Virus record (IMG/VR): IMGVR_UViG_3300025000_000053
Location: 185,854 to 249,853 of that record
Length of the DNA: 64,000 nucleotides
Direction: 5' to 3' (one strand)
Of this stretch, positions 1 through 58,351 are shown piece after piece (positions within the stretch are counted from its first letter, which is position 1; every line of letters begins with the position of its first letter). The position numbers and the translations under genes were made by a program. Below the pieces are notes generated by a model. The model saw only the letters and a program-made list of their open reading frames with translations, made no database searches and was not told the origin of the DNA.

Positions 1-16
1 TATTAAGAGATCTGAA

Positions 17-3000: not shown

Positions 3001-4234
3001 TAATGTTTCAGTAACTACAACTAATGATTCTAATAGTTTAACTAATTTTGTACCTAAAACTTTACAAGAATCTATTTTAAAGAAAACATTAGAATTATCA
3101 ATAGGTTCAGAATCATCAGGTGATTATACTAGTTCTAATAATGATATTAATGCATCAACAGGCAAAAAAATTTCTCCATCAATAGGTATTTTACAATGGA
3201 GAGGTAATAATGCTAAAACTTTAATGCAAAAAATGTATGAACAACTACCTGGTAATAGTGAGGCGAATTATTTTGCCAATCAAGTAGATTGGGGTAATAA
3301 AAGTCCTTGGAATGATATTCAAAGAGCAAGATTGAAAAAATACCTTGGAGATAATTTAAGTGTAAGTCAAAAAGTTCAAAATGAAATGGCATTATCACAT
3401 ATTAGAGATACAAATTTAGCACCAGTTTATAAATATGGTGTTAATACCAATAAAATAAAAGATCCGAGATCAATAGCATTTCTTGCTGATTTTGCTAATA
3501 CAGGACCAGCTCTTGTTAAACCATTTTTAGATAAATATAATCCAAATAATGGTGGAAAACCTGAATTTGAACATTTTATGGATGAATTTAAGAATAAGAG
3601 TTATTGGGGTAATAAAGGGATTTATGCTAGTAGAATAAAAAACACTTATTCTAAATTATCTGGATGGACTCCTGAAGTTGGTGGTAATGGTAGTTTTAAT
3701 ATATCATCTAATTTTGATAAAACTGCTGGTGGTTTTGGTGGAGAAGAACAAATTATACTCAATAGTAATAAAATTAATTTAGAAAGATTTACAGGTGGAT
3801 TAGGTGATTTATCAACATCTATTTCTAATAAATATAAAGGTGAAAACCTCGGAATTAATCGTAATATATTTGAAAGTTTAAATAATGGAACAGGTGAATA
3901 TATTACTAATAATAGTAATAATACACAAAGTTCAAATATATCAATAAATGAAATTGTTACTGTTTTAAAAGAAATTGCAATAAATACTAACACTACATCA
4001 AAAGGTATTAATGAATTAACTAATAAAGAAATAATAATTAATGTAGAAAATAAACCAAGTATAAATGATAATAACCAAAATAATACTATTAATCTAAATT
4101 CACAACAACCTAAAAACGCAACATTTGTCAGTCCGTTTTTTCAATCTATGAATGAAAGAAGTAATACTGGAAATAGTAAGGAACAACGAGAATATACAAT
4201 AGCTAAAAAAATAGCCGGTGGGAGAGTTAATTAA
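17..4234 (+). CDS. Tail tape-measure / tail-associated lysin with C39-like peptidase and lysozyme-like domains (probably 5'-truncated by the window edge)
   Basis: Long helical Ala/Gly/Lys-rich region. C39-like motifs YYSQYDDRW..GCGPTSMAMV..GHYVV..INDP (about 2300-2820). Second domain GSESSGDY..SIGILQW (about 3060-3670). Frame is open upstream of position 17. Confidence 0.75.
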   Translation: MYITGGVIDVVRRIGDNTSDFTQKPKDDNRSNIFDNSDNVVMPVRVDGVTSVRIVGSDRPIPIYFNMNMNQNQRRSNSFNNNISGLPNSINTGNNNYLVSSLTNALDIFDTENDKEEENKRIEKEREKELYQNQLEVSKKTSGFLIAQNNLRNEKDFTRNNEIRQTSLLQQIANISKNQHESWLSLFGKKGILTVAFLLTLPYLEKIFKWIKGFFGGDDDTGIGGGISTVVKKALGLIEKNDGSRKDAEDKDIINAQGRESYIKGTAVLARRYSPKLVKAIEKGKDKIANSNIVKNVTRYGSNLKNAFNPSSTVRGGTIDASFKVTDDTGKIIKEVTVNDSNKIIQAIKNTFERFFNNSFVKKLLGSSAGKIASKIINEVTKVLNYKTMFNNMAKLSKAFLRTGVIMFAAPVIISWDLATGAYEASRIFKVANESVDGKMQIASSVTKALIGFFPVIDILSEIFNEQTGMSLKQYVATTIYSMLASTEEIKKLEVDKKAFEQDKNEYNEKNKTKLSLNAYNDMKNKTFFQKFISNPLSKTKDFIVKTGSSISNSLSENWDNFKGGFSKGFKMMGDDVSNAMSKTPEMIKTFKDTLSKNWKELKDNSEKQWNNMKGFVSKSLKDTNNTLGILFGYKDEEGNDVSFTEGFNKGFKGLIKSIRDSWKDIGDGAKFYWDNTKAFTERKWKELSEKLPKAFESLDNWLGELLGFKDNDGNTLSLSDFASKQFNTIKKYLSNGKGSSTYSSGKGGNGNGGFGEEPNQLNNFTYYSQYDDRWGKTTYDLSKGHSSQPTLSARGCGPTSMAMVVSQLTGKRYEPPQLAKIAQEGGYSTNDGTTWGYFNKVAKDFSLDTSTVNPSNTINYLNNGMPVILSGKRDKYSFNDSPFTPGGHYVVAVGRDEKGNILINDPRGSKFSKPYNYNKVIKEARQGWAFSYNGGILPPNIVSSDNSNSSNKKLSTLDLFAKMIEAFTLYEENKRLGTNKKLSWDDIEGTSNDFNVSVTTTNDSNSLTNFVPKTLQESILKKTLELSIGSESSGDYTSSNNDINASTGKKISPSIGILQWRGNNAKTLMQKMYEQLPGNSEANYFANQVDWGNKSPWNDIQRARLKKYLGDNLSVSQKVQNEMALSHIRDTNLAPVYKYGVNTNKIKDPRSIAFLADFANTGPALVKPFLDKYNPNNGGKPEFEHFMDEFKNKSYWGNKGIYASRIKNTYSKLSGWTPEVGGNGSFNISSNFDKTAGGFGGEEQIILNSNKINLERFTGGLGDLSTSISNKYKGENLGINRNIFESLNNGTGEYITNNSNNTQSSNISINEIVTVLKEIAINTNTTSKGINELTNKEIIINVENKPSINDNNQNNTINLNSQQPKNATFVSPFFQSMNERSNTGNSKEQREYTIAKKIAGGRVN

Positions 4235-14443: not shown

Positions 14444-15436
14444 ATGTTTACATTGAATGAAGTTTCTAAAATATTAATTGAAAATGCAATTACTCTTAAA
14501 GAAAAAAATCAAATATATTCTCTTAAAGAATCAGATCAAAATATTGTTAATAATACAATGATATCCAATTTATATAAATCAGCTATAGAAAAAGCTCATG
14601 TAGATTTTAATGATATTCCTAATAGTAAAGGGGACTTAACTAAATTTTCAGGTTTTAAATCAATGTTAGATAGTGTTGATTTGTTACATCAATTATCTAA
14701 TAAAACTAATGTTAAAATTGATGAATTAGATATTTTAGATAAAGCTATAAACAATATTATTAATTATAAAGAATCTTTTGAAAAAGGATTTAAATTAGAA
14801 AAAGAATTTATTATTTTACAATATAATATTCTTGTTTGTGCATGTATAGAAGGTTTAAGTTCTATTATTTCATCTTATGTTGATTTTATAAAAAGACCTG
14901 ATAGAATAGAATTTACTTTAATTAAATCTCCTCAATTGACAGGTCGAATTTGTATTATGAATCTCGAAAAATTTAATTCTTGTGTACGTAGTGGTGAATT
15001 TGGTAAAGTTATTAAATCTGTTATCGATAGTGGTAAAGAAGGTTTTGTTGGAACCGAAACATTAATGATTGGTACTTTAATAGTCGGTGGAGTTTTAGTT
15101 TTAGTTCCATTAATGAGAGAATTAATTTTTTATTTTTATTATTCTAGATTAAAAATTTCAGAATATTTAAAAACTCAAGCCTTATTTTTAGAAATTAATA
15201 AAAATAATATTAATATGAATTCATCTTTAAATTCCAAAAATAAGAAACAAATTTTGGATAGACAACAAACTGTTATTAGGAATTTACAAGCATTATCTGA
15301 TAAAATCCGTGTTGACGATACAACTTCAACAACACAAACTTATAAAAATATGAATACGGAAAATAAAGGTTGGTCACTTGGTAGTGTTAAAACTCAATCT
15401 GCATCTGTAGATGGAAATGGGTTTAAGTTACTATAA
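14444..15436 (+). CDS. Virion structural protein
   Basis: SD gggagg; lies in the late operon; ILIEN and SLKES motifs near the N-terminus. Confidence 0.5.
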   Translation: MFTLNEVSKILIENAITLKEKNQIYSLKESDQNIVNNTMISNLYKSAIEKAHVDFNDIPNSKGDLTKFSGFKSMLDSVDLLHQLSNKTNVKIDELDILDKAINNIINYKESFEKGFKLEKEFIILQYNILVCACIEGLSSIISSYVDFIKRPDRIEFTLIKSPQLTGRICIMNLEKFNSCVRSGEFGKVIKSVIDSGKEGFVGTETLMIGTLIVGGVLVLVPLMRELIFYFYYSRLKISEYLKTQALFLEINKNNINMNSSLNSKNKKQILDRQQTVIRNLQALSDKIRVDDTTSTTQTYKNMNTENKGWSLGSVKTQSASVDGNGFKLL

Positions 15437-15511
15437 AAAAATAACTTTATTAAATTGACAATATAAACATATTTATAAAAAATCCTAATACTGAAAGGTG
15501 GTAAAATAATA

Positions 15512-16573
15512 ATGGCTATTTTTAATAGAGTAGGAAGAGGAATTACCATACCTTCATATAGTGGGTATGATTGTTTGGTTAATGGGGATTTGTTAGCAAT
15601 TCAAGAAGGTTATGAAGACCAATTGGCAATCATTGAGTCCATTCATGAAATGGATATAGAAGAAATTAATATGGAAAGTGATGTTAAAACTTTACGGGAA
15701 TCCGGTGCTGATGAAGTTAAAATTCAAACTCGTATTAATGAATTTGAATCTGTGGTTGAAAGTGCCATGGGTGGAGTCTGGGAAAACATTAAAGCGTTCT
15801 TCAGCAAAATGTGGGGTAAATTACAGCAGTTTTTTGCTTCTGTTATTCGTTTCTTTGACGGGTTGTTTAAAAGTGGTAAAGATTTTGCCACTAAATATGA
15901 GAAAGAACTTAGAAGGCTTAGTTTATCCGGTTATAAGCATAAAATGTTCAACTATAGTGAATTGGATGGTAACAATCATGTATCCAACGGTATCACTGTA
16001 GCAATGGAAATTGTAAATCAAACTGGAGCTTTAAAGAATTTCTCTTCTGACACTGAGGCTAAAAAATGTTTGGAAGATATGGAAGAAAATAAAGAAGAAA
16101 CCATTAATAAAGTTCGTGGAGCTTTTGTTGGCGGTGGTTCTAAAGATAGTGATGATTTTAAAAAAGGTCTATTCTCACACTTTAGGAGCGGTGCTAAAGA
16201 TAGTGAAGATATTGAAGAGCAATCCGTTAATATTGGAACCATTATTAATGCTTTAATAAGTGATAAATATGCTAAAATGGCAAAAGATTCTGAATCAGCC
16301 GCTGAGAAATCATTTACCACTATTATTAAAACTGTTAATGATAGGGAAAAAGAGTTTGGTAAATCTGTCGATGACAAGAATAAATCTGACGATAAGAGGA
16401 AACTTGCTTCTGTTCAAATTTCTATTATGCAAAAATATTCATCTTTGTTCAGTGAAGCCAAGACCATTGCCCTTGAATATTTTAGTGCATGGAAACAAGC
16501 TATTACTGAACGTGAGTCTGTATATAAGCAAGTATGTGTAAGTGCGTTTAGATATAAGGAAGAAAAAAAATAA
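15512..16573 (+). CDS. Internal head protein paralog 1
   Basis: Acidic propeptide ending VVE|S, then amphipathic GVWENIKAFFSKMWGKL. Late motif at 15466; C-ending codons suggest high expression. Confidence 0.6.
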   Translation: MAIFNRVGRGITIPSYSGYDCLVNGDLLAIQEGYEDQLAIIESIHEMDIEEINMESDVKTLRESGADEVKIQTRINEFESVVESAMGGVWENIKAFFSKMWGKLQQFFASVIRFFDGLFKSGKDFATKYEKELRRLSLSGYKHKMFNYSELDGNNHVSNGITVAMEIVNQTGALKNFSSDTEAKKCLEDMEENKEETINKVRGAFVGGGSKDSDDFKKGLFSHFRSGAKDSEDIEEQSVNIGTIINALISDKYAKMAKDSESAAEKSFTTIIKTVNDREKEFGKSVDDKNKSDDKRKLASVQISIMQKYSSLFSEAKTIALEYFSAWKQAITERESVYKQVCVSAFRYKEEKK

Positions 16574-16621
16574 TTGAATAATAAGAATATAAGTTAAAAA
16601 ATCAAAGGGGGATACATTCAA

Positions 16622-17707
16622 ATGGTTATTTTTGGACATAAGAGAACTAATGATGTAAATGTCGATTTTGATATTTCAAAATATGACCACATCCAACCTA
16701 CTACTGAAGCATTGGAACAAATCATAACAGAATCAGCTAAAGATTCTTATAAAATCCGTGCAAGTATATATATTTCGGATGTACTGATGGAGCAAGCTGT
16801 ACTGACTGAATCAGCTGATCCTCAAGTTCTTCTTGAGGTATTTGGTAAAGGTTTCTTTACCAAAATAAAAGACATGTTCGTAAGAATGTGGAATGCTATA
16901 AAAGCTTTCTTTGAAAAAATGAAAAGACAACTTATTTTGTTTTTCTCTTCCGGTAAAACTTTTGTAGAAAAGTTTGAAAATGAATTACGCAGTAAGAATG
17001 CAAAAGATTATAAGTACAAATCATTTAAATATACTCCGAGTAAAGGTGATAGTTATGGTAGTAAAGTACTTGATGCAATTAATTCAACTGAAAATGAATA
17101 TGAAAATAAACTTAGTAGTTTAGATGTAAGAGACGTTTCTAAACACAAGAGTGCAATGGATTCTAAAAAAGATAATATGAAGGATTCATATGATACCGGT
17201 GAGGAAAAAGAAGGTATATTTAAAAGTTTAAATGTTGATTCTATTTCTGAATTACAGGAAGAATCATATAAAGAGTACAGGAATGGTTCAAAAGAAAAAG
17301 AAGAATTTAAAGATTTTGAAAACAACAGTAAAGAAGACATGATTAAATTCATTAAAGACAAGGATAAAAATATAACTGACCTTGATAGATATCAGAAAGA
17401 TTTGGATTCTCATTTCAGTAAAGTAATTAAGGCTATTGAAGCCGCCGGAAGTAAGTATAAGAATGAGGAATTATCTAAGGTATCACCTTATGTTTCTCAT
17501 AGCGTTGAAATGTTGAGATTCTGTATGTCGATTCGTTCAGCATTAGTTAAGATGCATATCGATTATATAAAAGATGCAGCCAGTGATTTCGAATCTATTT
17601 TAAAAGGTTTTTTAAGATTTAAAGTAGTTAAAGAAAGTTTTGAAGGTAATTATGATGATGATAAAGGTATTACCAATATCTTTGAAGCAGCAATGAAATT
17701 AGTTTAA
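16622..17707 (+). CDS. Internal head protein paralog 2
   Basis: IITES, VLTES and VLLEV motifs, then GFFTKIKDMFVRMWNAIKAFF. Confidence 0.6.
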   Translation: MVIFGHKRTNDVNVDFDISKYDHIQPTTEALEQIITESAKDSYKIRASIYISDVLMEQAVLTESADPQVLLEVFGKGFFTKIKDMFVRMWNAIKAFFEKMKRQLILFFSSGKTFVEKFENELRSKNAKDYKYKSFKYTPSKGDSYGSKVLDAINSTENEYENKLSSLDVRDVSKHKSAMDSKKDNMKDSYDTGEEKEGIFKSLNVDSISELQEESYKEYRNGSKEKEEFKDFENNSKEDMIKFIKDKDKNITDLDRYQKDLDSHFSKVIKAIEAAGSKYKNEELSKVSPYVSHSVEMLRFCMSIRSALVKMHIDYIKDAASDFESILKGFLRFKVVKESFEGNYDDDKGITNIFEAAMKLV

Positions 17708-17713
17708 TATATT

Positions 17714-17757
17714 AATACATTAGATGAATAGTAAATAAACTATTCATCTAATGTATT
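17714..17757. terminator. Long-stem intrinsic terminator
   Basis: aatacattagatgaatagt-aaataa-actattcatctaatgtatt. Confidence 0.7.
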
Positions 17758-17815
17758 TTATATTTTCTTTGAAAACAAATAAATAAGAAAAAAGAAAAGG
17801 AGTTGACTTTTATTT

Positions 17816-18895
17816 ATGAATTTAAAGAATATTTTCAATAAGAATAATTCTAATAATAAATCAATAAAAACCTTATTAACAACTGATGATATTGATTTTG
17901 ATACAAGTCAATCTTGTCTAGAATACTTTATATTACTAGAAGAAGATTATTTTAATATTAATAAGGAACATTTACAATCAGCACATATCGCTAATAAGGA
18001 TAAAAATATGGAAATAATACGAGAAGGTTTTAATGATTTTATTAATTCGGTTATTTCATTTTTTAAAAATCTTTTGGATAAATTCAAAGAATTTATGAAA
18101 AGAATATTTATGATAATATATGCTTATCTTGGTGATTTCGAAAAGTTCTTAGATAAGTATAAAGAACAGTTAAGAGGTTTAGACCCTAAATTTAATGTTA
18201 AAGGATTTAAATATTCTTTTAAATCAAATATACCTAATTTGGATATTATTAATAATATTATTAACTCATATAATAGTGAATTAAATGATATTGATAATAT
18301 GACAAAAGATAAAATTATAGAACAAAGAGAAAAATTTATGGCAACTGCTAATCTAAATAAAATTAGAGCTAATATTATTAGTGTATCAGGTGAAGTAAGT
18401 TCAGAGGATTATTTAAAAGATGTTAAAAAAATATTTAGAGATGGTAATGAAGAAAAAATAGATATAGAAGTAAATAAATCATTCTTAACAACAGTTATAG
18501 CAGATTACCCATTTCTAAAGAAAAATTATTCAGATGCTATTAAAGAAAGAGATGATATAATTGCAGTTATAGAAAAAATTAAATCATTCTTTGAAAAAAA
18601 TGCATCAGTTTATTATAAAGGTAAGGATAAAACTATTGGTACTAAATTATTAAATAGAAGTGGTAATAAAATTCAAACTGGAGATAATGTTGAAAAAAAT
18701 TATAGTGAAAGTAAAATTAATTTAATTAATACATTCTTTAGTTTTAAATTTGCACAATCAAAAGAAATTGGTAGTATGTGTACCATAGCATGTATTGAAA
18801 AGGTTAATGCACTAAAAGAATGCTTATCCTTTTATAGAGAAATTATTAAAAGATGTGCTTTTAAAGGACCTAAAAGTTCAACTGAAGTTAATTAA
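17816..18895 (+). CDS. Internal head protein paralog 3
   Basis: IIRE|G, then FNDFINSVISFFKNLLDKFKEF. Late motif at 17774. Confidence 0.55.
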   Translation: MNLKNIFNKNNSNNKSIKTLLTTDDIDFDTSQSCLEYFILLEEDYFNINKEHLQSAHIANKDKNMEIIREGFNDFINSVISFFKNLLDKFKEFMKRIFMIIYAYLGDFEKFLDKYKEQLRGLDPKFNVKGFKYSFKSNIPNLDIINNIINSYNSELNDIDNMTKDKIIEQREKFMATANLNKIRANIISVSGEVSSEDYLKDVKKIFRDGNEEKIDIEVNKSFLTTVIADYPFLKKNYSDAIKERDDIIAVIEKIKSFFEKNASVYYKGKDKTIGTKLLNRSGNKIQTGDNVEKNYSESKINLINTFFSFKFAQSKEIGSMCTIACIEKVNALKECLSFYREIIKRCAFKGPKSSTEVN

Positions 18896-18918
18896 AAAAT
18901 AATACGAGGTGAAAAACT

Positions 18919-20007
18919 ATGGACTATTGTTTGGAAACAAGTATATTCCATTTAGAAACTGACAAACAATTCTTTTCTACATTATTGGAAAGAATGGAAC
19001 AAGAATCACAATCTATTAATAAATCAATAGATGATAATTTTATTGTATTAGAGGCTGATACTACAAATAATAATCAAGGGATATGGGAGAAAATTAAAGC
19101 TTTCTTTAAACGTATCTTCGGTGTATTTTCAACTAAAACTAAAACACTTTTTGATTCAAATAAAAAATGGATGGATGAAAATTTTAATAAATTAGATAAA
19201 ATTAATTATGATAAGTTAAAAATAGTCATGTTACCATTTTGGTCAATGACTATTAATGATATTAAAGGTGTTCTTAATACAATTCAAGGAATAGCTGATA
19301 ATGAATTAAATAATCCTAAAAGATTAGAAAAATATAAAGATGTAGATGAAATGAAGAATACTTTATTTAAGGAATATTTTAATGAAGACAATGATTTAAC
19401 TTTAGGGTTAAAAAATAAATTTAGGAGTAATAATCCTAAAGGTCCTATTAAAACACAAGAATTATCTGGAGGAGAGTTAAAAAATAAGGTTGCTGAATTT
19501 AAAGATTATTGTTACAATTATGGTAAAGATATAACACCTATGATTCAAGCTTTGATTAATAAAGCTGAACAATCTTTAAATCGTATAGAAAGAGTTCTAA
19601 AAGAATCTATAAATTTTTGTTTAGTTGAAAGTGCCTTTTATTCTCAAACTGAACTATTTTATTGTAGTAATTTTGAAGCTGTGTTTGAAGCTGATGAAAC
19701 AAATAAAGATGATAAAAAGAAAGATGAAAAAAAACCTGGTGATGCTTCAACTAAACCAACCGAAGTATCAGTGGTTAATACAGATGATAAGAGTAAAGTT
19801 GATGAACACGAAGAAAATAAGAAATACTCTAATGTGAGTAATTCACAACTTACTATGTATAAAAATATAGCCCAAATTATTCAATTAGCTATAACTTCAG
19901 CAATGACAGTTTTAGAAGAAAGATTTAGTGCTTATTTAAATGCTTTAAAGAAAATTGTTGCTGAAGCTGGTGGAAATATAAATAATAATCCTGATGATAA
20001 AAAATAA
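18919..20007 (+). CDS. Internal head protein paralog 4
   Basis: VLE|A, then GIWEKIKAFFKRIFGVF; internal VLKES, LVES and VFEA motifs. Confidence 0.55.
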   Translation: MDYCLETSIFHLETDKQFFSTLLERMEQESQSINKSIDDNFIVLEADTTNNNQGIWEKIKAFFKRIFGVFSTKTKTLFDSNKKWMDENFNKLDKINYDKLKIVMLPFWSMTINDIKGVLNTIQGIADNELNNPKRLEKYKDVDEMKNTLFKEYFNEDNDLTLGLKNKFRSNNPKGPIKTQELSGGELKNKVAEFKDYCYNYGKDITPMIQALINKAEQSLNRIERVLKESINFCLVESAFYSQTELFYCSNFEAVFEADETNKDDKKKDEKKPGDASTKPTEVSVVNTDDKSKVDEHEENKKYSNVSNSQLTMYKNIAQIIQLAITSAMTVLEERFSAYLNALKKIVAEAGGNINNNPDDKK

Positions 20008-32831: not shown

Positions 32832-35800
32832 TCATTTTTTAATATTTAGACAAAATAATATATATGAATTTAAATCTAAACCATAATCGATTTCATTAGG
32901 TACAGCACTCCATACTAATAATGGATATTTTTTATTCGATTCTATTTTAGAATGTATACTCTCAATATATTGTTTCAGATGTATTAAAGAATTAAAAGGA
33001 CCATGAATTCCTAATTGTTCACCCCAAGAAGTTTCAATCCAATAAATCTTTTCATTTTTAATATAATAACATAAAGTATGATTAAAACCACCAGTATTTT
33101 CTTTTTCATTATATTCAATAAAGAATAAACAATTAGCTTTATATATCTTATTATTATTAAATAAATTACGAATAAAAATTGCTTGTTCATGTGATGAGCC
33201 ATTTTGAGATTCAATAAGTTCATCATCATTTTTTAATATAGTAAAGTCAGAATTCTTAATATTATTTCTCATAAAATTATATACATCTTCATCACCATTA
33301 AAATTAGGTAAATCAGTTAGATATAATTCAGTAACAATATTACTTTCATATTGCTTTATTATTGTTAATGTATTTTTATCAACTGCATCTTTATTATAAT
33401 TCTCTAATTTACCCCTAGTTACAAAATGAGTTTTTTTATGTTTAGCAAAGTCATACGGTTTATATAAACTAGGATGTTTATCAATCATACCATTATTAGA
33501 AGCCTTCAATATTTCAGCTACAAATTGACTACAAAAATATTCATTTTGTCTATCAGTTTCTTTACCAATAGAAATATTAAATAATCCAATAAAACTAAAT
33601 TTTAATTTGTCTTTTTTCTTTTTAAAATCTTCTAATCTATTTATCATTAATTCTTTTTGTTCTTTAGTAACAAATAATACATAGAGTGAATAAATTGTAT
33701 CTTTAGTAACATCTTTAAGTAAACCATCTTTTATATCTTCATTAATAAATGTCATATTGGAATCTTTAAATTTTCTACCAAAACTATACATATCATTCAT
33801 ACTACTATCAAAAGAGATACTTACATGACTATATACATCACCAGTAACAAATTTAATTACTTTAGCCATATTAGTACTAGTGAAAGTTAATAGAATAAAT
33901 ACTGGATATAAATTATTATTATCGTAAGATTCCTTAATAATTTCCCCTATTCTTGCCTTATAATTAATAGTTAATTCTTCACCTTTATTGATATTTTTTA
34001 TACTATAAAGATGATATTTACCATTATCATTAACTATTTTTAAATTAGGAGTATCTGAATGATTAAAATAATTATCAAAATTATTAATATCATCTTTTTT
34101 TATTGAAGTTTCACCTATTATATTATTCATATTAATATCTTTTTTAACAAATGAACCTTTAGCTAATTTACTAGTTATTATAAAAGATTCCTTAACAAAA
34201 TCTCTTTCACCTTCAAAATCAAATTGTTTATAATCTATAGTTAGTTCTTCACCTTTTTTAATTTTATTTTTAGATTTATAAAAATAAACTTTCTTTCCAT
34301 TTCTAATAGTTTGAACTAATACTAAATTAGGATTATTTGAATGATTAACAAATTGACCCGCTTTAGTTCGTTTATAATCTTTATCCGGATTATCAGTATC
34401 ATTAACTTTCTTTATAGCTAATAATTTAGTATTAGAATCAATATTTTTATTTGCAAATATACCTTTACCTGATATTTTTGAATCTTTAACATTATAGTAT
34501 GTTTCATTTATATGAATTAATTTAACACCTGTTGTATAATTATGATTTATTTTAATACCATTTTTATTTATATAGTTCATAAATTCAATAGTAGTTAAAT
34601 TATATTTATCAATTTTATATTCATATATACTAAATTTAAAAGACTCACCTTCATCTTCAAACATATTTTTCAATATAAAGTTAAATATATCTTTTAAAGA
34701 ATTTGATTCATATATCCCTTGAATTTTTTTATATGATGATTCAAAATAATAAAATTTATTATTATTTATATAAACTAAAAAAGTATGTGTTGAAGAATTT
34801 TTATTTTTTAATTCAATATAATAAGTTTTAAATTTAAAATTGAATTTTTTATTAAATATATTTCTTTCAAATTCAGTATAATCCCAACATACACCAACCT
34901 TATATTTATAAAAATCCTTTGGAGAAATAGTTTTGTATAAATTAAAAAATTCATCACCTGATAAATTATCAGCTAATATTTTTTTATCTTTAGTTAATAT
35001 ACCATATTTAAAATCATTAAGGATTTTATTTAATTCTAAAGGATTATTTATTTTAGAGATTTCATCTATATATGATTCCTTTAAAACATCTTCTATTCCA
35101 GCTTCTTTTTCCATTTTAACCAACCTAGTATAATAATCAGGGATTTCATCTAAATGGTCTTTAGCTATCATTCTAGCTTTATCTAAATTTTTAGTATGTT
35201 CCTGTTCAATTTCTATACCAATTTTTAATTGTTCAGAATCATAATCAGAATCTGGTCTTATATCATAACTAAGGTCAATAGCTTTTTCATCTTTATTTTC
35301 TTCTATAAAAGATTCTTTAATAAATTCATCAAGAGATTTAATAAACCTTATATGAGTTTTATTAACCATATCACTTTTTTGTTCTTTAAATCCATATTTT
35401 TTAGCTAATTTGATAGATATATTATTAGTCTTTTTTATATTTAGAACAATTGATGTTATATCTCTTTTAGATCGATGGCAGAATTGAATACCTTCATTCA
35501 TTAAAGCATGAGAAATACCTTTTCCACGAAATTCTTCTTTAATAAATATATTAAAGAAAGCATACCCTCTTTTAACCTTTACTTCAATAAATCCAGCATT
35601 TTTATTACCAACTTTATAAATATATCTAAAAGCTACTTTATTATAAAATTCCCTTGGTCCTAATTTTTCATTATTATCATTATCTCCTAATATTCTTAAT
35701 GCACGATGATATTCAGCTTCTATTATAATATCAACATTATTATAACTTTCAGATATTAAATACTCAATTTCTTTATTTTTTAAAAAATTTATCCACTCAT

Positions 35801-37379
35801 CTTCAACTTGTTCAATTTTTAATCCAAATATATTAAAGAAATATTTCTTCATTGTATTTAAAGAATTCATTTTTGGTAAACTATCAATAAATTCTTTTAT
35901 TTTTTTTATTAAAATTAGATTTAACTGTCCTTGACCAAGAAGATATGTTATAAATGAACCAGCTATAGAATATGAAACAATAGTTTGTAATTTACTAAAT
36001 TCATTATTATCATAAATAATATTTTCGAGTTTACTAAATCCTCGTTCCATAATTAATTTAGCATTATCGTGAATGGAATATTTTCCAAACCACCCTATAT
36101 CATTTTTATATTTTTCATCTAAAAATCTCGGCCATGAATAATACATAGCTATTCCCTCAGTCCAAAACATTCCAGAAATTTTAAACCCTTTCCAAATATT
36201 TTCTATTCCTGATATATTAAACATAGTTACAATATGTGCAACTTCATGAGTATCAGATGAATGAATACTTTGTACTACAAGTTCATGGGGAAATGCTCTA
36301 CCCTTACCTTTCATTCCAGTAAGTTGAATATAATTATGTTCTGGTAATTTGTAATATGTTATTTTTTTCCCAATAGGAAAATTCCAATTTGATGCCACTA
36401 TAGACATAAAGTTTTCTAATCGTTTAATAGCTTTTTTAATTTCATAAAAGTTTTCATCTTTTGAATATTTATATATAAAATGTTTTGATTCTTCAGTATC
36501 CCATTCGAATATTGGGTGAATGATTATATCTTTTTGTTTATACAAACTTTTTTCAGTTAATACTTCCGTATTATTATTAATATCATTAAAAGATTCCATT
36601 AAAACAAATATGGGTCTGTTATCTTCACCATTAGATTCAATATATCTATCTTTAGCTTGTTTTAAAAATTCAAATATAGAATCATAATTCTTATTAGTAA
36701 CTTTTATATAGCTAAAAGTTGTTTGACTCATTAATACCTTATCCTTTAATCTTTCTTTAACTTTATCTACTGCTTGAATTTTACCATGTTTATTTTCATT
36801 ATCCCCACCATCTTTAACCTCTATTTCTAATCCTAAAGAAGCTATAAATGCATCTGGTATATAAAATTTTTCTTCACCTTCATATTCATAATAATAAACA
36901 TGAGGTGATGGTGTCATTACATCGTCTGAATCAAATTGTAAAAATATATCTAAGAATTTTAATAAATCTAATTCATATGAACCAGTATATGTTTTTTTAG
37001 CTCCATCTGACCATATATACTCACCTGAAATTTTTCTATTAGCTAACATTTTCTTTTGTTGTTCAGGGTTACTTAATAAATGAATTTTACCATATTTACC
37101 AATCATTCTTTTTTTAAATATTTCCCTATATATATCTTTACATTTAGGATTTTCACAAAATCTTTTATACTTATTAGTTACATTACACCATTTAGTAGGT
37201 TTTTTACAAATAATACATCTACCTTTATCTTTACCTGTTTTTAAAAAATAAAAATATTGTGATGACGTAAAATTTTTAGGTATCAGTCCATTATGTTCAT
37301 CTTCAAGATGTTGATATAAATCTTCAATATGATTAAATTTATCATTACATATAGTACATTTAATCAAATTAAAACACAC
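32832..37379 (-). CDS. Multi-enzyme polyprotein: Zn-finger + TnsA/gp4-like nuclease, gluzincin, GNAT, DUF5661-like, transglutaminase-like, SET, partial SET, permuted papain (YiiX-like), second transglutaminase-like
   Basis: Motifs YIPD..IEVKD; HEVAH..TEG; FRGKG; EHTK..IAKDHL.E.PDYY; GVCWDY/THTF/YFES; NHS..PN/GEELTIDY twice; YSHVSI..YFCSQF; GSSHEQ/NHTL/YWIETSW. Late motif at 37396. Confidence 0.75.
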   Translation of the reverse strand: MCFNLIKCTICNDKFNHIEDLYQHLEDEHNGLIPKNFTSSQYFYFLKTGKDKGRCIICKKPTKWCNVTNKYKRFCENPKCKDIYREIFKKRMIGKYGKIHLLSNPEQQKKMLANRKISGEYIWSDGAKKTYTGSYELDLLKFLDIFLQFDSDDVMTPSPHVYYYEYEGEEKFYIPDAFIASLGLEIEVKDGGDNENKHGKIQAVDKVKERLKDKVLMSQTTFSYIKVTNKNYDSIFEFLKQAKDRYIESNGEDNRPIFVLMESFNDINNNTEVLTEKSLYKQKDIIIHPIFEWDTEESKHFIYKYSKDENFYEIKKAIKRLENFMSIVASNWNFPIGKKITYYKLPEHNYIQLTGMKGKGRAFPHELVVQSIHSSDTHEVAHIVTMFNISGIENIWKGFKISGMFWTEGIAMYYSWPRFLDEKYKNDIGWFGKYSIHDNAKLIMERGFSKLENIIYDNNEFSKLQTIVSYSIAGSFITYLLGQGQLNLILIKKIKEFIDSLPKMNSLNTMKKYFFNIFGLKIEQVEDEWINFLKNKEIEYLISESYNNVDIIIEAEYHRALRILGDNDNNEKLGPREFYNKVAFRYIYKVGNKNAGFIEVKVKRGYAFFNIFIKEEFRGKGISHALMNEGIQFCHRSKRDITSIVLNIKKTNNISIKLAKKYGFKEQKSDMVNKTHIRFIKSLDEFIKESFIEENKDEKAIDLSYDIRPDSDYDSEQLKIGIEIEQEHTKNLDKARMIAKDHLDEIPDYYTRLVKMEKEAGIEDVLKESYIDEISKINNPLELNKILNDFKYGILTKDKKILADNLSGDEFFNLYKTISPKDFYKYKVGVCWDYTEFERNIFNKKFNFKFKTYYIELKNKNSSTHTFLVYINNNKFYYFESSYKKIQGIYESNSLKDIFNFILKNMFEDEGESFKFSIYEYKIDKYNLTTIEFMNYINKNGIKINHNYTTGVKLIHINETYYNVKDSKISGKGIFANKNIDSNTKLLAIKKVNDTDNPDKDYKRTKAGQFVNHSNNPNLVLVQTIRNGKKVYFYKSKNKIKKGEELTIDYKQFDFEGERDFVKESFIITSKLAKGSFVKKDINMNNIIGETSIKKDDINNFDNYFNHSDTPNLKIVNDNGKYHLYSIKNINKGEELTINYKARIGEIIKESYDNNNLYPVFILLTFTSTNMAKVIKFVTGDVYSHVSISFDSSMNDMYSFGRKFKDSNMTFINEDIKDGLLKDVTKDTIYSLYVLFVTKEQKELMINRLEDFKKKKDKLKFSFIGLFNISIGKETDRQNEYFCSQFVAEILKASNNGMIDKHPSLYKPYDFAKHKKTHFVTRGKLENYNKDAVDKNTLTIIKQYESNIVTELYLTDLPNFNGDEDVYNFMRNNIKNSDFTILKNDDELIESQNGSSHEQAIFIRNLFNNNKIYKANCLFFIEYNEKENTGGFNHTLCYYIKNEKIYWIETSWGEQLGIHGPFNSLIHLKQYIESIHSKIESNKKYPLLVWSAVPNEIDYGLDLNSYILFCLNIKK

Positions 37380-37458
37380 CCTCTCATTATTCTATTATTT
37401 AAATGTTAATTATATATAAAAGATATAACTAAATAAAAAAATCAAGTAGATATAATAT

Positions 37459-37860
37459 CTACTTGATTTTTAATTTTTTCTCCTTTATGAATTCCATTAA
37501 CATAATTTGAATAGTTTTAGTTACATAACCTATTATATATTCCTTGCTATAATAATATTCTAAATTTGTCATAAAAGGTTTATTAAATGACATTATGACC
37601 GCATGAGTTAATTGATTTAAATCTTTTTCAAAATCTTTAATCATTGTCATATTTCTTAATTCATACTCTAGTTTATATTTTTCTAAGAATGTTCGTTTTA
37701 TAGTAGTATCTATGATATTCATTAAAGTATCTAAATCTTGAACATTGATATGAAGGTCATGCTTAATTTTATATAAAAAAATACTACTAGCAATAATCAA
37801 AGATGTTGTTAGAAAAAGTATAAGTGTACTTACTATGATTATAATATTGTTAATCTCCAT
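37459..37860 (-). CDS. Membrane-anchored late protein
   Basis: N-terminal TM helix; late motif at 37888-37899. Confidence 0.55.
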   Translation of the reverse strand: MEINNIIIIVSTLILFLTTSLIIASSIFLYKIKHDLHINVQDLDTLMNIIDTTIKRTFLEKYKLEYELRNMTMIKDFEKDLNQLTHAVIMSFNKPFMTNLEYYYSKEYIIGYVTKTIQIMLMEFIKEKKLKIK

Positions 37861-49261: not shown

Positions 49262-50812
49262 TTATAGTTGATTTAAGAAACTTAAAAATTCATCAGATAC
49301 AACATCTTGATTGACTTCAAGTTTTTCTCCAAGCTTATCTGGATGGTCATAATCAACGATTGTAAATGTTGAATTTAAAATTGTTGATAATAAATTCAAA
49401 ATTAAATTTGACTTTTTTACTTCACTAAGAGTTGAGTATTTATCTTGTATTAATGATTGATATATTGGAGTTTCTTCTAATTTATTTAAAAATTTTGTAT
49501 TTTGAATAGTACGAGTATTTAATCTTCCTTCAATATTACCACTTATAATCTGAGGAAGATATAAAGCACCCTGAATTTGTAATCTTCTTTTCAATAATAT
49601 AACAAGAGTTATATATTGCTTTCTTGTTAATAAATTTAAATCTCTATATCCACCAAAATATTTAGCATAAAAATAGTGTATTAACTGTACTTGAAATTTA
49701 TTTATCTTATGAAATTTCTTATAAAAGTTAATTTCATCTTTAGTAATTTCAACACCAATATTTTTCCTGATGTTTTTAATTGTACTTTTAATATTTACTT
49801 CAGATAATATTATCAATGACTCATCTATTTTATTAGAATTCATTTCAAATTTATCTAAACCGCTTAAACCATCTTCACCACTTTTATCTGCACTTAATTC
49901 TACTAAATTAACTTTATAATTCTTTTTAATAATAAAATATAATTGTTTCTCTAGTATAAAAGAATTGAAGTTAACAATATTTTTATTGAAAACATATTTA
50001 AACATAGTTTCAGTTATAATATTTTTTTTCAATAAACCGTTGAGATGTATTAGTGGATCAACACCGAATATTTCTTGTTGTTCCCACATTGGTTTATTTG
50101 TAGCTAAGTTTTTATTTATCTTAGCAGACACTGTCACCATTAATTTATTATAAATATTAATTCCATCACCATACAAATCAAATAAACCTTTATAAAAATT
50201 ATAGATATAATCAATATCTTTCTTAACATTATTCACATTAATATATTGAAATACTACTGGAATCATTATTTTAATAGACATTGATATCATCATCATTATT
50301 TTAGCATGTTCATTTGTTATCTCTAATGATTCACTATATTTCTTTTTATCATTACTTGTCAAATCTATATAGTAATTATCTTCAACCATTTTAATAATCT
50401 TTTCTTTCATGGTATCTGTAAATAAAATACCATATAGAAATTTAATAAAGGTTTTAGGTTTTTTAATAGGTTTACTCTTATTATCAATGAAATATTTAAG
50501 TTTAAAATATGACATTAATAACTCATTATTAATATCATAAAATTTAATAAAATAATTTAGATAATGAATTATTCCCTTTCCTTTGTCATTATCCTCAAGT
50601 TGATTAACATATGATTCTTTCTTAATAATGAAAACATTTAATGTGCTAGTACTATCCTTTTTAAAGATTTTATCAAATGGGATTATTATTATTTTCCCAT
50701 CAGATTTAATAATCTTATCTTTTTCTTCGGGCACCCACTCATCTACTCGTATTATTTCGGTAACAGAAATCATTACTAATATCCCACCCCCCCCTAATAA
50801 AAATACCTCCAC
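49262..50812 (-). CDS. Probable non-virion RNAP promoter-specificity subunit (AR9 gp226 / phiKZ gp68-like)
   Basis: About 500-aa helical protein two genes from the chaperonin, the spacing I recall for AR9 gp226 and gp228. Early motif at 50862. Inferred from context, not from alignment. Confidence 0.4.
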   Translation of the reverse strand: MEVFLLGGGGILVMISVTEIIRVDEWVPEEKDKIIKSDGKIIIIPFDKIFKKDSTSTLNVFIIKKESYVNQLEDNDKGKGIIHYLNYFIKFYDINNELLMSYFKLKYFIDNKSKPIKKPKTFIKFLYGILFTDTMKEKIIKMVEDNYYIDLTSNDKKKYSESLEITNEHAKIMMMISMSIKIMIPVVFQYINVNNVKKDIDYIYNFYKGLFDLYGDGINIYNKLMVTVSAKINKNLATNKPMWEQQEIFGVDPLIHLNGLLKKNIITETMFKYVFNKNIVNFNSFILEKQLYFIIKKNYKVNLVELSADKSGEDGLSGLDKFEMNSNKIDESLIILSEVNIKSTIKNIRKNIGVEITKDEINFYKKFHKINKFQVQLIHYFYAKYFGGYRDLNLLTRKQYITLVILLKRRLQIQGALYLPQIISGNIEGRLNTRTIQNTKFLNKLEETPIYQSLIQDKYSTLSEVKKSNLILNLLSTILNSTFTIVDYDHPDKLGEKLEVNQDVVSDEFLSFLNQL

Positions 50813-51752: not shown

Positions 51753-53432
51753 TTATTGTTCTCTATTACTGGTCATAATAGATATATATTGATTACTTGA
51801 TAATAACAAAGATACTATAGATGTTACTGCTTTTAAAATTTCAATATCTGTTTGACATGAATTAATAATATCTTTAGAAAAACAATCATCAATTAAATTC
51901 CAACATTCTTTTTTTTCAATACACTCATTAATTAAGTCGTTAACAACAAAATCAGTTGACTCACCTTTAAACTTATTATATATTACTTTTGAGAATACTT
52001 CAACAAAGGTTTGTCTTAATAATTCAAAGAATTTCTTCTCATTATCAGTAAATTTAATACCTTCATTTAATAATTCATCTATTACAATTGGAATAATTAA
52101 ATTACCACCAATATTATATCCGTATTTAAATGCAGACTCACATGCTTTAACCGCATCTTCAACTAAATCATAATTAGTAGTTTTCATTAGAGATGAGTTA
52201 CCACCAACATTAATTATACCCATTTTACATTTCAATTTTGATACCCTCTGTTTTAAATCATAAATCTGACTATTAACAATATTTAAATTTTGATTCACTT
52301 CTTCAATTTCCTTAAGTTTAGTAATAGCATCATTTAAATATACATCGTAAGTACTTTGTTTCATAGAATTGAAACCTTTAATAATACTCGTTTTAGGACC
52401 AATTGAAATTTTATCTACCTGACCAATATAATGACTAATATAACCATCATTTTCTTTCTCTAAATCATATAAAGTATTTTCACTAATAAGCATACCACCA
52501 GTTAACATACAGAAATCATTATAAAACAGTTGTTGTAAATTATTAAATAGTGCAATTCGTGTATAAACAGTTGAACAAAAACCTGATTTTCTAAATTCTA
52601 TATTTGCTGTTTGTTTTATATGATTTAATAATAAATTGTCATAATGTGGAGCTATTACAACAACTCGTCTATTAGTTGAAATGCCTAATTCAATTATTTT
52701 AGATATAATTTTATCAAAATGAATTTTTTCAATTTTATGATCAAACATAATAATTAACGGATTATCAATTTCACAAATACCAATATCATTTTCTGCAAAT
52801 ATACTATCAAGATAAGTAATATTAGCTCTATAACCTTCAATTATTTCACATGAAGTGATACTTGTCTTAGATGGAGAGAATTCAATATTTGGATTTTCTG
52901 TTTCTTTATATATTTTACGGATTATATCAGATAGGATATGATCTCCATTAGTTGCAATCATTGCCAATTGATATATCTCTTGATAGTCATTGTCTTTAGT
53001 GATTTTTGTAGAAGATTGTAATATTCTATCTGTAATCATTTTAACACAAATAGATAGAATATCAGAAAAATTTCTAGATCTTATCTTTTTCAATTCTTTA
53101 TCAGAATCTAATAATATTAATAATGAATTAGCAGCAACTAAAGAAGAAGAACTACCGTCACCAACCTTAATAACAACTTGTGCGGCTATATTGATTAATA
53201 ACTGTTTAATATTATTATCAATACTATTATTGGAATTAATATTCTTTAATATTTGCCAGCCATCTTTAGTAATGTGCATTTGTCCAAATTGCTCAATTAT
53301 TGTGTTGGACCCATAAGGACCTAAACTTTTTTGTATAGCAGATGAAACTTTATTAAAAATCATATGAATACGTTGTTTAAATTCCTCTTCACTAATAATA
53401 TTCCAATCATTTTTTTCTTCAAAACTAAGCAT
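51753..53432 (-). CDS. groEL: Phage chaperonin (GroEL-like)
   Basis: SLGPYG..ITKDGWQIL..VGDGSSS..EDAVKA..GG. Late motif at 53463-53474. Confidence 0.85.
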   Translation of the reverse strand: MLSFEEKNDWNIISEEEFKQRIHMIFNKVSSAIQKSLGPYGSNTIIEQFGQMHITKDGWQILKNINSNNSIDNNIKQLLINIAAQVVIKVGDGSSSSLVAANSLLILLDSDKELKKIRSRNFSDILSICVKMITDRILQSSTKITKDNDYQEIYQLAMIATNGDHILSDIIRKIYKETENPNIEFSPSKTSITSCEIIEGYRANITYLDSIFAENDIGICEIDNPLIIMFDHKIEKIHFDKIISKIIELGISTNRRVVVIAPHYDNLLLNHIKQTANIEFRKSGFCSTVYTRIALFNNLQQLFYNDFCMLTGGMLISENTLYDLEKENDGYISHYIGQVDKISIGPKTSIIKGFNSMKQSTYDVYLNDAITKLKEIEEVNQNLNIVNSQIYDLKQRVSKLKCKMGIINVGGNSSLMKTTNYDLVEDAVKACESAFKYGYNIGGNLIIPIVIDELLNEGIKFTDNEKKFFELLRQTFVEVFSKVIYNKFKGESTDFVVNDLINECIEKKECWNLIDDCFSKDIINSCQTDIEILKAVTSIVSLLLSSNQYISIMTSNREQ

Positions 53433-56069: not shown

Positions 56070-58351
56070 TTATATTTTTAGAATATTACTATAGTAATCA
56101 TCTTCAGTTGTCTTAATAATTCCAATACCCAAACTATCTAATACACCATGGAACGTAGATAAATTATTATTTATAATTGTACTATAATCAATAAAAGGAA
56201 TTATCCAATTTGGTATCTTAGGTATATTTCTAGGCAAAGCTATAACTTTAACTCCTTTCTCTCTTATTTTCTTATCACTATTATTATATATATTTTCAAT
56301 TATCCTTTCATATATTTCAGGCTCAGATTGTTTTATTTTTTCAATAGAGTTTTCATCCATATTAACCTTAATAATATCAATGTGTTCAGGTAGTTCTATT
56401 GAATTATCAGGATAAGCATAATTCCATGCTAAAACAGCACGGACACCCATTTCTCTTAATGGATCTTTATATGCTTCTAATTCTTTTACTGATTTAGGAA
56501 TTAGAAAATCTTTTTGACCTGATTCTAGAGATATTCTAATTATATTTTCTAATTTTTCTAATTCTTTTAAAACATTAGATATATTAATTTCTTCAGTTGA
56601 TAATAAATGTTCTTTAATAAGATTTTTAAAGAATTTTTCTGTTGCTTCTCTTGTTGATGACTTAACAAAATCTAACGTAGTGTTCACATAGGTCGTTAAT
56701 CTATGCAGTTCTCTTATGAACTTCCCTAAGTTTCCCTAGGATACCAGACTATATCTTCATCCTTATTATATAACTAATAAGGAGCCTCCCATTTCGATTT
56801 AAGGGATTTTCACCCACTCACTTGAGCCCTACTCCTATTGATCATTTCAGATCCAAAGGGATAGTCGTTGAACCTTTCTCTTATATTAGAGACTTGGCTG
56901 CTGATTACCCAATATTTTAGTTTATTACCTTTATCTTAAGGTACTAAAATCTATAAGGATTTTCCAGCAGTTAAAGAGGTTTTCTTTATATATTACTATA
57001 TAAAGGAGCAATATTTATTACCCTTAATATCAACTTTTTCAGGATATATTTCATCTCCTTCTCTTAATCTAACACTACTTATATATCTTTTCTTTTTCTG
57101 TGTTAAAATAAGTCTAGTGAATAAAAATTCATTTTTCATATTTATTTTATGTCTATATCTTTTAGGTATATTTACATCTTTAGTATATTTCTTCAATGTA
57201 TTAGTAACCATATTAGTTATTATATAAGCCAATAAGTTGATAGAAATAAATTTTAATTCAGTTTTATCCTTATTTATTAATTTATCATTAACATCGATAA
57301 TATTATATTTAATAAATTTAACCCATTTATCAATAGTCATAATAGTTGAATCTGTATCTGAACCAACTACAGTTTTTCTTTCATCATATTTTAATCTACG
57401 AATCCTATTATATGGAGAAAAATTAAAGAAAACAAATTCTTTATATAGTTTCCATAATAGTTCTAAATCATCTTTTACGTTATTAGGTATCTTATTAGGA
57501 TTTTTAAATGTATCAATATTTTCTATAATATATGATAATAAGTTTCTTATTTTTCTTAATTTTGAAAATTCAAAAATGTTATTCTTATAGTAAATTCTAT
57601 TAATATCTTTTTGACTTAAAGATAATAAATAATTTAAAATAAAAGAATTATACTCTTTTTTATAATTAAAAAATCTTTTCTTTAAATATTTCATTAATTG
57701 TTTTGAACTAATATTTTCTAAAAAATTATCATTTAAATTTCTTTTTTCCTTAATTACATTAGTTAAAAAAAACACACATTCTTCAAGATTATTAAATGGA
57801 GCATTATTTTCTAAAAAAGTTTCAAAAGCCATTTCAGCTGTAGCTATTAATGATTGGCCGGAGTTTGTAATAGAACTGGCGGTGTATAAATTATAAAAAT
57901 TAGATGTTGGGGCTCCGTTGGACCCGAAGAACGAGTTTGCGTTGGTTTTCTCAGAACCTTGTAACCTATCAAATGTCCCATATTCATAATCATCTTTTGA
58001 ATATTTTTTTAATTGATTTTTATACTCTTTTCTTAACGACATAAAGTTTTCTAGCATAACAGCGGCTGGATTCAATGATTCATCTTGATTTTTAAAAAAT
58101 ACTCCGAATCCAGCAACTATAGGTTTAGTTTTTTTAACCCAATCATATACTGATATTAAATCTACATTAATAGATTTATGAATATAGTTATTATGAATTA
58201 TAGCTTTAGGGTTAATTAAGTTTTTATCTATAATATCATCTAAAACTTTTGATATATCTTTATTTGTTAGTTCAGGATACATTCTTTTAAATATCTCTAT
58301 ATTACTTTCTTTCCAATCTTTTATAAATAAACTTTTAATTTTTTTAGATAT
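56070..58351 (-). CDS. polB: Family B DNA polymerase, C-terminal polypeptide of a split enzyme; exons 58351(or 58282)-57020 and 56675-56070
   Basis: EKTNANSFFG (motif B), GSDTDS (motif C), KKRY, and DIKG-LDFVKSST restored after splicing. Motif A (DxxSLYP) is absent. Confidence 0.85.
56676..57019 (-). mobile_element. Group I intron 3 (344 nt, ORF-less) in the DNA polymerase gene
   Basis: On the minus strand: P aactgctggaaa, Q aatcagcagc, R gttcaacgacta, S aagatatagtct. The exon ends ggt and the intron ends in G; frame restored. Confidence 0.9.

Follow-up and report, generated by a model that had tools for sequence, protein, structure and literature searches.

Two short SET domains in a nine-module polyvalent protein of an uncultured jumbo phage, with module junctions resembling prohead protease sites

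The polyvalent gene and its modules

The window analysed here is the last 64 kb (64,000 nucleotides) of the 249,853-bp IMG/VR virus record IMGVR_UViG_3300025000_000053, in which an original prediction, made from the letters alone, had recognized two SET domains in tandem in what was taken as a phage of a bacterial host. Both domains lie in one open reading frame (ORF) of the minus strand, 1,515 codons long (32832-37379), for which an alternative GTG start is available at 37379. The likely start is the TTG at 37367, since GAGAGG precedes it by 12 nt and since the database copy of the protein (P0002, 1,511 residues), like its counterparts P0152 and P0153 from sister phages, begins with MIKC; the gene then counts 1,511 codons (32832..37367, minus strand). 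Residue numbers below are those of the 1,515-residue translation from GTG (P0001), and are 4 higher than the true numbering. The SET pair is no separate gene: it makes up two of the nine modules of a single multi-enzyme ORF. The adjacency of the two SETs was thus correctly seen in the original prediction, which had missed the 1,511-residue, nine-module protein that carries them.

All modules are given with their residues and their window coordinates on the minus strand. Module 1 (1-262; 36594..37367) associates a C2H2 zinc finger with an endonuclease (phrog_15137, E-value (E) 1.4e-62); it is the part that stays constant at the N-terminus across the protein family, and 60 of 70 members have it. 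Module 2 (263-544; 35748..36593) displays the motif HEVAH at residues 378-382 and is possibly a zincin-like metallopeptidase; the motif is directly visible, the one family match, to DUF1570, is weak (E 0.05), and no homologue of this module was found among the other 70 members of the family. Module 3 (545-689; 35313..35747) is a GNAT acetyltransferase (Acetyltransf_10, _1 and _7, E 2.6e-9 to 1e-6) and module 4 (690-768; 35076..35312) a DUF5661 domain (Pfam, E 8e-15). Module 5 (769-945; 34545..35075) resembles a transglutaminase-like cysteine peptidase, with GVCWDY followed by THTFLVY; its Pfam match to DUF553 (E 8e-4) is marginally below the cut-off, and its nearest clusters in a feature-based atlas are transglutaminase-like. 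Then come SET1 (946-1064; 34188..34544), a mini-SET of 119 residues, and SET2 (1065-1150; 33930..34187), a short SET of 86 residues flanked on each side by the junction motif described below. Module 8 (1151-1335; 33375..33929) is permuted papain-like, of the YiiX/C92 type (phrog_1128, E 1.9e-8; Peptidase_C92, E 1.2e-3, under the Pfam cut-off), and occurs in 31 of the 70 family members. Module 9 (1336-1515 plus the stop codon; 32832..33374) is a paralogue of module 5 (E 1e-6) in which Ser (GSSHEQ) replaces the Cys of GVCWDY. It is kept in P0152 and P0153, and would be either a variant with a Ser nucleophile or an inactive copy.

Several unrelated effector-type domains thus stand in one phage polypeptide, and their content varies between relatives. 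Judged by its domain composition, this is the architecture of a polyvalent protein in the sense of Iyer et al. 2017 (PMC5512222).

The record has 24.5% G+C and is complete according to CheckV. Its proteins match PHROGs of virion proteins, of a phage multisubunit RNA polymerase subunit, of GroEL and of DNA polymerase, and the nearest cultured relatives, at 23-46% protein identity, are the Bacillus phages AR9 and PBS1 and the Yersinia phage phiR1-37, with the Staphylococcus S6/DC4 group, Listeria LPJP1 and Fusobacterium phages as further relatives in this range. From these matches, the element is an uncultured bacterial jumbo phage of the AR9/PBS1/phiR1-37 group, all cultured members of which infect bacteria, and the bacterial host supposed at the outset is in keeping with this. 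The polyvalent gene gave zero megablast matches against cultured phages, and the public runs that contain the sequence are groundwater metagenomes only.

The two SET modules

The SET pair spans residues 946-1150 (33930-34544). Pfam SET (PF00856) matches the whole ORF in two stretches (E 2.6e-19), the match covering profile positions 48-105 only; scored separately on the DNA, SET2 reaches 40.5 bits and SET1 36.8 bits, for a cut-off of 22.4. Six motifs of this region, including the SET motifs first quoted, are all in frame on the minus strand. SET1 carries ISGKGIFA (34452-34475), FVNHSNNPN (34326-34352) and GEELTIDY (34230-34253), and SET2 carries LAKGSFV (34146-34166), YFNHSDTPN (34044-34070) and GEELTINY (33960-33983). 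The N-terminal GxG strand-loop, a contact of S-adenosylmethionine (SAM), reads GKG in SET1 and AKG in SET2, and both halves of the pseudoknot are intact (VNHS and EELTIDY in SET1, FNHS and EELTINY in SET2). Among solved structures the best sequence matches are the SET domains of MLL3, MLL4 and MLL1 (E 5e-7), with an alignment that covers the NHS motif, the EELxYDY motif and then a DYK-FDFE stretch. With the Pfam cut-off passed and the SAM-binding and catalytic motifs present, both modules are, on sequence grounds, SET domains of the lysine-methyltransferase type, as had been proposed; that they are catalytic, and on which target, we infer.

SET1 belongs to a family of mini-SETs of about 100 residues, for which we collected 391 cluster representatives at E<1e-3. 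Its members are mostly stand-alone proteins of 100-120 residues, those of the cyanophages P-SSM7 and P-RSM6 included, and some already bear the label 'SET domain containing protein [uncultured Caudovirales phage]'. Others sit in giant proteins together with ART-PolyVal, NUDIX, M23, Topo IB/LigT or SNF2 domains. While the stand-alone phage mini-SETs are single domains, two divergent SETs are here adjacent; among the hits such a tandem appears in the protein of this phage only, and in one or two doubtful short proteins. GxG (both Gly), NH and the final Tyr are each conserved at 90% or more across the family, which also conserves S-x-I-x-G-x-G-x-F-A, a PD-x-DY-x-RT segment, NHS-x-x-PN, KGEELT-x-DY and a tail F-x-x-EG-K-R-x-F. 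Every one of these conserved segments is found in SET1, whose tail is FDFEGERDF. SET2 has NHS-x-x-PN and KGEELTINY but neither the PD-x-DY segment nor the C-terminal tail. The short SETs P0113, P0133 and P0109 share its deletions; such short SETs occur alone or inside other giant proteins.

One or both modules, SET2 being the likelier, might be pseudoenzymes that bind a lysine-containing or SAM-like ligand but transfer no methyl group. For SET2 the loss of the TG-PD-DY-RT segment and of the F-x-x-EG-x-R-x-F tail points this way, as do two low-confidence stretches in its structural model and its absence or replacement in sister phages, which makes it dispensable. On the other hand, both modules retain NHS and the terminal Tyr, which in SET enzymes have the closest links to SAM binding and catalysis, and the existence of other short SETs with the same deletions, alone and in giant proteins, argues for a maintained function. 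We thus regard the pseudoenzyme explanation as unlikely, though worth keeping in mind for SET2.

As an alignment built on the tandem placed all homologues on SET1 and left SET2 bare, SET2 was folded alone by AlphaFold2 from an alignment of 83 rows. The model reached a mean predicted local distance difference test (pLDDT) of 79.6 and a predicted template modelling score (pTM) of 0.70, with the two low-confidence stretches mentioned. The top 50 fold matches listed for it in the PDB are all SET or PR domains, with template modelling (TM) scores of 0.52-0.71 normalised by query length; they include MLL1, vSET, a Plasmodium SET, EZH2 and NSD2. Among viral proteins, SET2 matches best with SET proteins from uncultured tailed phages and from giant viruses. 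In this model, SET2 is a complete short SET fold, the outcome that the tandem SET proposal predicted for a structure calculation.

It had also been suggested that SET2 is a recent partial duplicate of SET1, or its dimer partner in a tandem that would stay uncut. The adjacency of the two modules and their resemblance (38-42% identity; aligned at 42%, E 6e-9) are in favour of this. The chlorovirus vSET, similar in size, works as a dimer, and it figures among the fold matches of SET2. Against a recent copy, SET1 of P0152 is 90% identical to the present SET1, whereas SET2 is as far from SET1 as it is from unrelated mini-SETs, and the deletions of SET2 are common to other short SETs. A maximum-likelihood tree of 83 mini-SETs is star-like and can neither place SET2 nor show a duplication; in it SET2 forms a long branch (1.13 changes per site) that does not join SET1. 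A word-indexed search with SET2 alone returned no candidate. As SET1 orthologues differ by 10% only, as SET2 is as distant as unrelated mini-SETs and as its branch is long, the sequences indicate that SET2 is not a recent copy of SET1. With, in addition, a junction motif between the two modules and sister phages that manage without SET2, the duplicate and dimer partner explanation seems to us highly improbable.

Module junctions

Six of the module borders have the form [LIV]-x-E-S-[FY]: LME-SF, ISE-SY, IKE-SF, LKE-SY, VKE-SF and IKE-SY, with their Glu codons at 36594-36596, 35748-35750, 35313-35315, 35076-35078, 34188-34190 and 33930-33932 respectively (minus strand). The fifth is the border between SET1 and SET2 (FVKE/SF, residues 1064/1065), where V-K-E-S is encoded at 34185..34196 (minus strand). 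The border between module 5 and SET1 has no such motif. From the composition of the protein 0.28 occurrences are expected, and none of 5,000 shuffles reached six. With the close form [KMS]-E-S-[FY], no other ORF of at least 80 codons in the genome contains more than one match. Across the 70 relatives the motif is found 75 times for 14 expected, typically around residue 260-270, at the end of the shared N-terminal module, and again between later modules.

The codons of the junctions vary: Ser is encoded by TCT, AGT or TCA, Lys by AAA or AAG, and the Tyr codons also differ. This indicates that the conservation acts on the protein and does not reflect a DNA repeat. Junctions serving as hot spots of DNA recombination, another candidate that we considered, were rejected for the same reason.

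The comparison with close relatives shows how the modules are exchanged. Compared module by module, P0152 (1,071 residues) and P0153 (1,469 residues) show 70-90% identity with P0001. The HExxH, transglutaminase-like and SET2 modules are all missing from P0152, in which the junction that follows SET1 leads directly into the YiiX-like module. In P0153 an unrelated module of about 115 residues takes the place of SET2, and there is an extra M23 peptidase. Close relatives thus swap modules exactly at the junctions, as far as these alignments tell. In both proteins a domain of about 115 residues with a weak ASCH match (E 0.009; 478-598 in P0152) precedes SET1 without a junction, at the position held by the transglutaminase-like module in the present protein. 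Even once the protein is processed, SET1 may always remain joined to a partner domain. The cargo of more distant relatives comprises NUDIX, STAND NTPase, calcineurin-like phosphoesterase, M23, SNF2 and GNAT domains; a SET is present in only three of the 70 relatives.

The prohead protease and the capsid site

Prohead proteases of the S77/S80 families cut C-terminal to Glu (PMC5694885, PMC10052503). In T4 Alt, an ADP-ribosyltransferase that is ejected, the cuts fall at ITE-6 and LTE-619 (PMC5694885), and for SPN3US gp245 Ser is preferred at P1' (PMC10052503). The phage has a gene of this kind (genome 31393-32190, minus strand), matching Peptidase_S77 (T4 gp21) at 34.2 bits for a cut-off of 27, Peptidase_S80 (phiKZ gp175) at 25.8 bits for a cut-off of 23.4, and the PHROG annotated as head maturation protease. 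Initial whole-genome scans with Pfam S77 and Gp23 gave no match; the protease and capsid genes were located with protein queries from Staphylococcus phage DC4, then confirmed by hmmscan.

In the major capsid protein (P0224) just one site has the form [LIVMF]-x-E-[SAG]; it reads LIKE-SS and lies around residue 100. We examined this column in 120 database homologues (57-100% identical) together with the capsid protein of DC4 (L003:2919-4523), which has ILME-SS at the equivalent place. Over these 121 sequences the Glu is invariant and the residue immediately before it variable; P3 is I, L or V with two exceptions, and P1' is S in 94, N in 17 and A in 10. Six junctions and a matching capsid core thus conform, at the level of sequence, to the (aliphatic/small)-x-Glu sites of the family. 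A protease gene being present, the capsid site being conserved and alike, and the family cutting after Glu, the junctions look like prohead protease sites. We also observe, in the N-terminal 80 residues or so of the DC4 capsid protein, INE-SY and VFE-SY within a propeptide-like region that precedes ILME-SS, and the E-S-Y motif is therefore not confined to polyvalent proteins. A large subgroup of the capsid homologues (P0271-P0324) is about 650 instead of about 568 residues long and has extra domains PF13287/PF13290, which suggests that some phages of the clade have a capsid protein with a fused decoration domain.

If cut at the six junctions, the protein would yield fragments of 30.5, 33.4, 17.0, 9.3, 35.3, 9.9 and 42.8 kDa, of which the 35.3-kDa one corresponds to the transglutaminase-like module with SET1, the 9.9-kDa one to SET2 alone and the 42.8-kDa one to the YiiX-like and C-terminal modules.

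The protein might also cut itself at E-S-[FY] by means of its own peptidase-like modules, namely the zincin-like, transglutaminase-like and YiiX-like ones, the prohead protease being uninvolved. It possesses up to four such modules, a zincin-like processing of polyvalent proteins was proposed by Iyer et al. 2017 (PMC5512222), and the strict S-[FY] at P1'-P2' is unusual for a gp21-type protease. As to a zincin hub of that sort, HEVAH is present, the DUF1570 match is weak (E 0.05) and the module is absent from relatives. Of the 28 relatives that have at least two junctions, 21 contain nothing homologous to any of the four peptidase-like modules, an indication of a protease that acts in trans, and in 19 relatives with at least two junctions HExxH is missing altogether. 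The [LIV]-x-E-S core recurs, moreover, at the putative maturation site of the capsid protein, with its Glu invariant. A cis-acting peptidase thus appears less likely than the prohead protease, and self-cleavage as a whole distinctly unlikely.

Expression and possible route into the virion

Over its full length module 1 shares 37-46% identity with AR9 g233 and phiR1-37 g237, stand-alone proteins of cultured relatives that end about 20 residues before the position of the first junction. In the phiR1-37 record, g237 bears the label 'phage structural protein'. Transcription of AR9 g233 is late: its RNA rises from 0.47 to 141 and 1092 at 5, 20 and 40 min, and its late promoter has been mapped. It is divergent from the baseplate wedge gene g232, and the polyvalent gene, like g233, adjoins a gp25-like baseplate wedge gene.

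The consensus of AR9 late promoters is AACA-N6-T(A/G) (PMC5312081). A match, AACA-N6-TA, lies at 37396..37407 (minus strand), 40 nt upstream of the TTG. Over the whole genome, 59 of 273 genes have the consensus upstream of them, compared with 18 in the antisense control and 6.5% expected, which suggests that the non-virion RNA polymerase has kept its promoter specificity. The consensus also precedes the genes for the prohead protease and GroEL. Just 5' of the match upstream of the polyvalent gene, and just 3' of a 133-codon gene (37459-37860), we noticed a hairpin (caagtagat ... atctacttg) followed by seven T (37433-37470, minus strand); it looks like an intrinsic terminator that would make the polyvalent gene a separate transcription unit.

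Delivery by the phage particle, which the original prediction had put forward, is made plausible by the label of phiR1-37 g237, the late expression of AR9 g233, the late-promoter match upstream of the polyvalent gene, the baseplate wedge neighbour in common with AR9 and the likeness of the junctions to the capsid site, all of which bear on it indirectly. The protein could instead remain unpackaged and work late, in the cytoplasm, as a multi-enzyme acting on phage or host proteins in the course of assembly, for instance by methylation or acetylation of virion proteins, the junction being a linker kept by shuffling. Packaging is indeed deduced from the stand-alone homologues of module 1 only, late expression fits functions at the time of assembly equally well, and methylation of the own proteins of the phage is possible. 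But a linker needs no fixed Glu-Ser-aromatic; these residues are kept while the codons differ, and they equal the capsid site. Furthermore the architecture is like that of injected polyvalent proteins, with a constant head module, a variable cargo and mini-SETs associated with ART-PolyVal. We consider an unpackaged enzyme improbable, though by no means negligible.

Proposed role of the SET modules

The explanation that we retain, with a confidence a little above even, is that the SET domains are cargo of a late-expressed polyvalent virion protein, which would be cut by the prohead protease and injected. By what is known of these protein families, the polyprotein would be made late and its constant zinc-finger/endonuclease module would take it into the prohead. 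There the serine protease of gp21/gp175 type would cut after Glu at the six [LIV]-x-E/S-[FY] junctions and release seven pieces: the endonuclease, the HExxH module, GNAT, DUF5661, the transglutaminase-like module with SET1, SET2, and the YiiX-like with the C-terminal module. These pieces would be ejected with the DNA into the next host, where the SETs would use SAM to methylate lysines of host or co-injected phage proteins before phage gene expression. Bacteria have no histones. Possible targets are nucleoid proteins, the transcription and translation machinery, defence proteins and co-injected phage proteins, none of them favoured.

Several points weigh against this explanation. We found no mapped capsid cleavage site for any phage of the AR9 group, and the site used here is deduced from conservation; with its strict S-[FY] behind the Glu, the junction motif is narrower than the sites published for gp21-type proteases. 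It is for stand-alone homologues of module 1, not for the polyvalent version, that the structural label and the late expression are on record. The model of SET2 was built from an alignment of the SET family and thus leans toward the SET fold, and it is the only model of a SET fold that we have for the pair, since AlphaFold2 on the single sequence of the tandem (residues 940-1150) gave an unusable pLDDT of 33. Lastly SET2 may be inactive, having Ala for the first Gly of GxG and no family tail.

A wider proposal is more doubtful, and we advance it only tentatively: in this uncultured AR9-like jumbo clade the prohead protease would act as a 'dispenser' of an exchangeable string of effectors, encoded by one late gene with capsid-type cleavage sites between them and loaded behind a shared N-terminal carrier. 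In this phage the string would include two free-standing mini-SETs, injected with the DNA, for lysine methylation in takeover or anti-defence in bacteria.

Comparison with known systems

Polyvalent proteins (PMC5512222) are many-enzyme phage polypeptides as well, with GNAT and peptidases among their domains, a variable domain content and the same proposed processing and delivery with the DNA. SET domains are not mentioned in the text of that work and are part of the cargo here; they are likewise unmentioned in the jumbo-phage survey by the group of Iyer et al. Two further differences are that a single short repeated motif, matching the putative capsid maturation site, points here to the prohead protease and not to a zincin, and that the carrier is a zinc-finger endonuclease specific to phages of the AR9 group. 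This carrier is shared with AR9 g233, PBS1 gp124 and phiR1-37 g237 ('endonuclease fused to N-terminal Zn finger domain'), which have the same module 1 and the same baseplate wedge neighbour and, unlike the present protein, no cargo.

T4 Alt and the internal proteins of T4, and the ejection proteins of phiKZ, 201phi2-1 and SPN3US, are equally effectors packaged in the head, cut after Glu by S77/S80 proteases and ejected. Substrates of the gp21/gp175/gp245 type mostly lose an N-terminal propeptide, and Alt also a C-terminal one, whereas six internal cuts are predicted here, separating seven enzymes.

Among SET domains, vSET of Paramecium bursaria chlorella virus 1 (3kma, 1n3j) is the same kind of minimal viral SET, with about 119 residues and neither pre- nor post-SET zinc clusters. 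Its TM score with the SET2 model is 0.61, and the sequence match is weak (E 0.02). It is, however, encoded on its own in a eukaryotic virus, and its substrate is histone H3K27, while the modules of 86 and 119 residues described here are parts of a phage polyprotein and would meet bacterial proteins, among which there are no histones. The MLL/KMT2 SETs (5f59, 4z4p, 2w5z) have in common with ours NHS, ELxYDY and DYK-FDFE, in an alignment restricted to the C-terminal half; the phage modules differ from them by the absence of a SET-I insert of normal length, of a post-SET and of WRAD partners.

Phage SET annotations, polyvalent proteins and processing by prohead proteases are thus already known. 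What appears undescribed is a SET cargo in a polyvalent protein, a free SET of 86 residues bounded by protease-type sites, and a repeated junction motif equal to the putative capsid maturation site. In the literature we came across no phage SET enzyme whose target is known. Lysine methylation by SET domains is a central regulatory chemistry of eukaryotes, and a few bacterial pathogens and giant viruses use SETs against eukaryotic chromatin. If the SET modules are active and injected, they would form a new class of early phage effectors acting on bacterial proteins; and should the protease indeed dispense the string of effectors, lysine methylation would join ADP-ribosylation and acetylation in the chemistry of phages. 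The junction motif, for its part, offers a testable rule for the cut sites across a family of giant phage proteins, for the pieces present in virions and for the insertion of new modules. If this rule holds, the cargo of the virion could be predicted from sequence in uncultured jumbo phages.

Other features of the genome

Elsewhere in the window, PHROG matches identify a GroEL-like chaperonin (51753-53432, minus strand) and a subunit of the multisubunit RNA polymerase (49262-50812, minus strand). A DNA polymerase fragment of 428 residues (56996-58282, minus strand) matches two parts of longer profiles. These three genes are hallmarks of the lineage related to AR9 and phiKZ. Cultured phages of the AR9 group have uracil-containing DNA.

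Five ORFs of about 350 codons (14444-20007) were considered as a paralogue family because of their size; two of them were compared and had no detectable relation, so that this grouping was dropped. At the other end of the window, an ORF of 3,288 codons (genome 180221-190087) enters it on the plus strand (2-4234). Its last 1,405 residues have no PHROG match and contain a Peptidase_C39-like domain (E 4.7e-17); its product may be another giant virion or effector protein.

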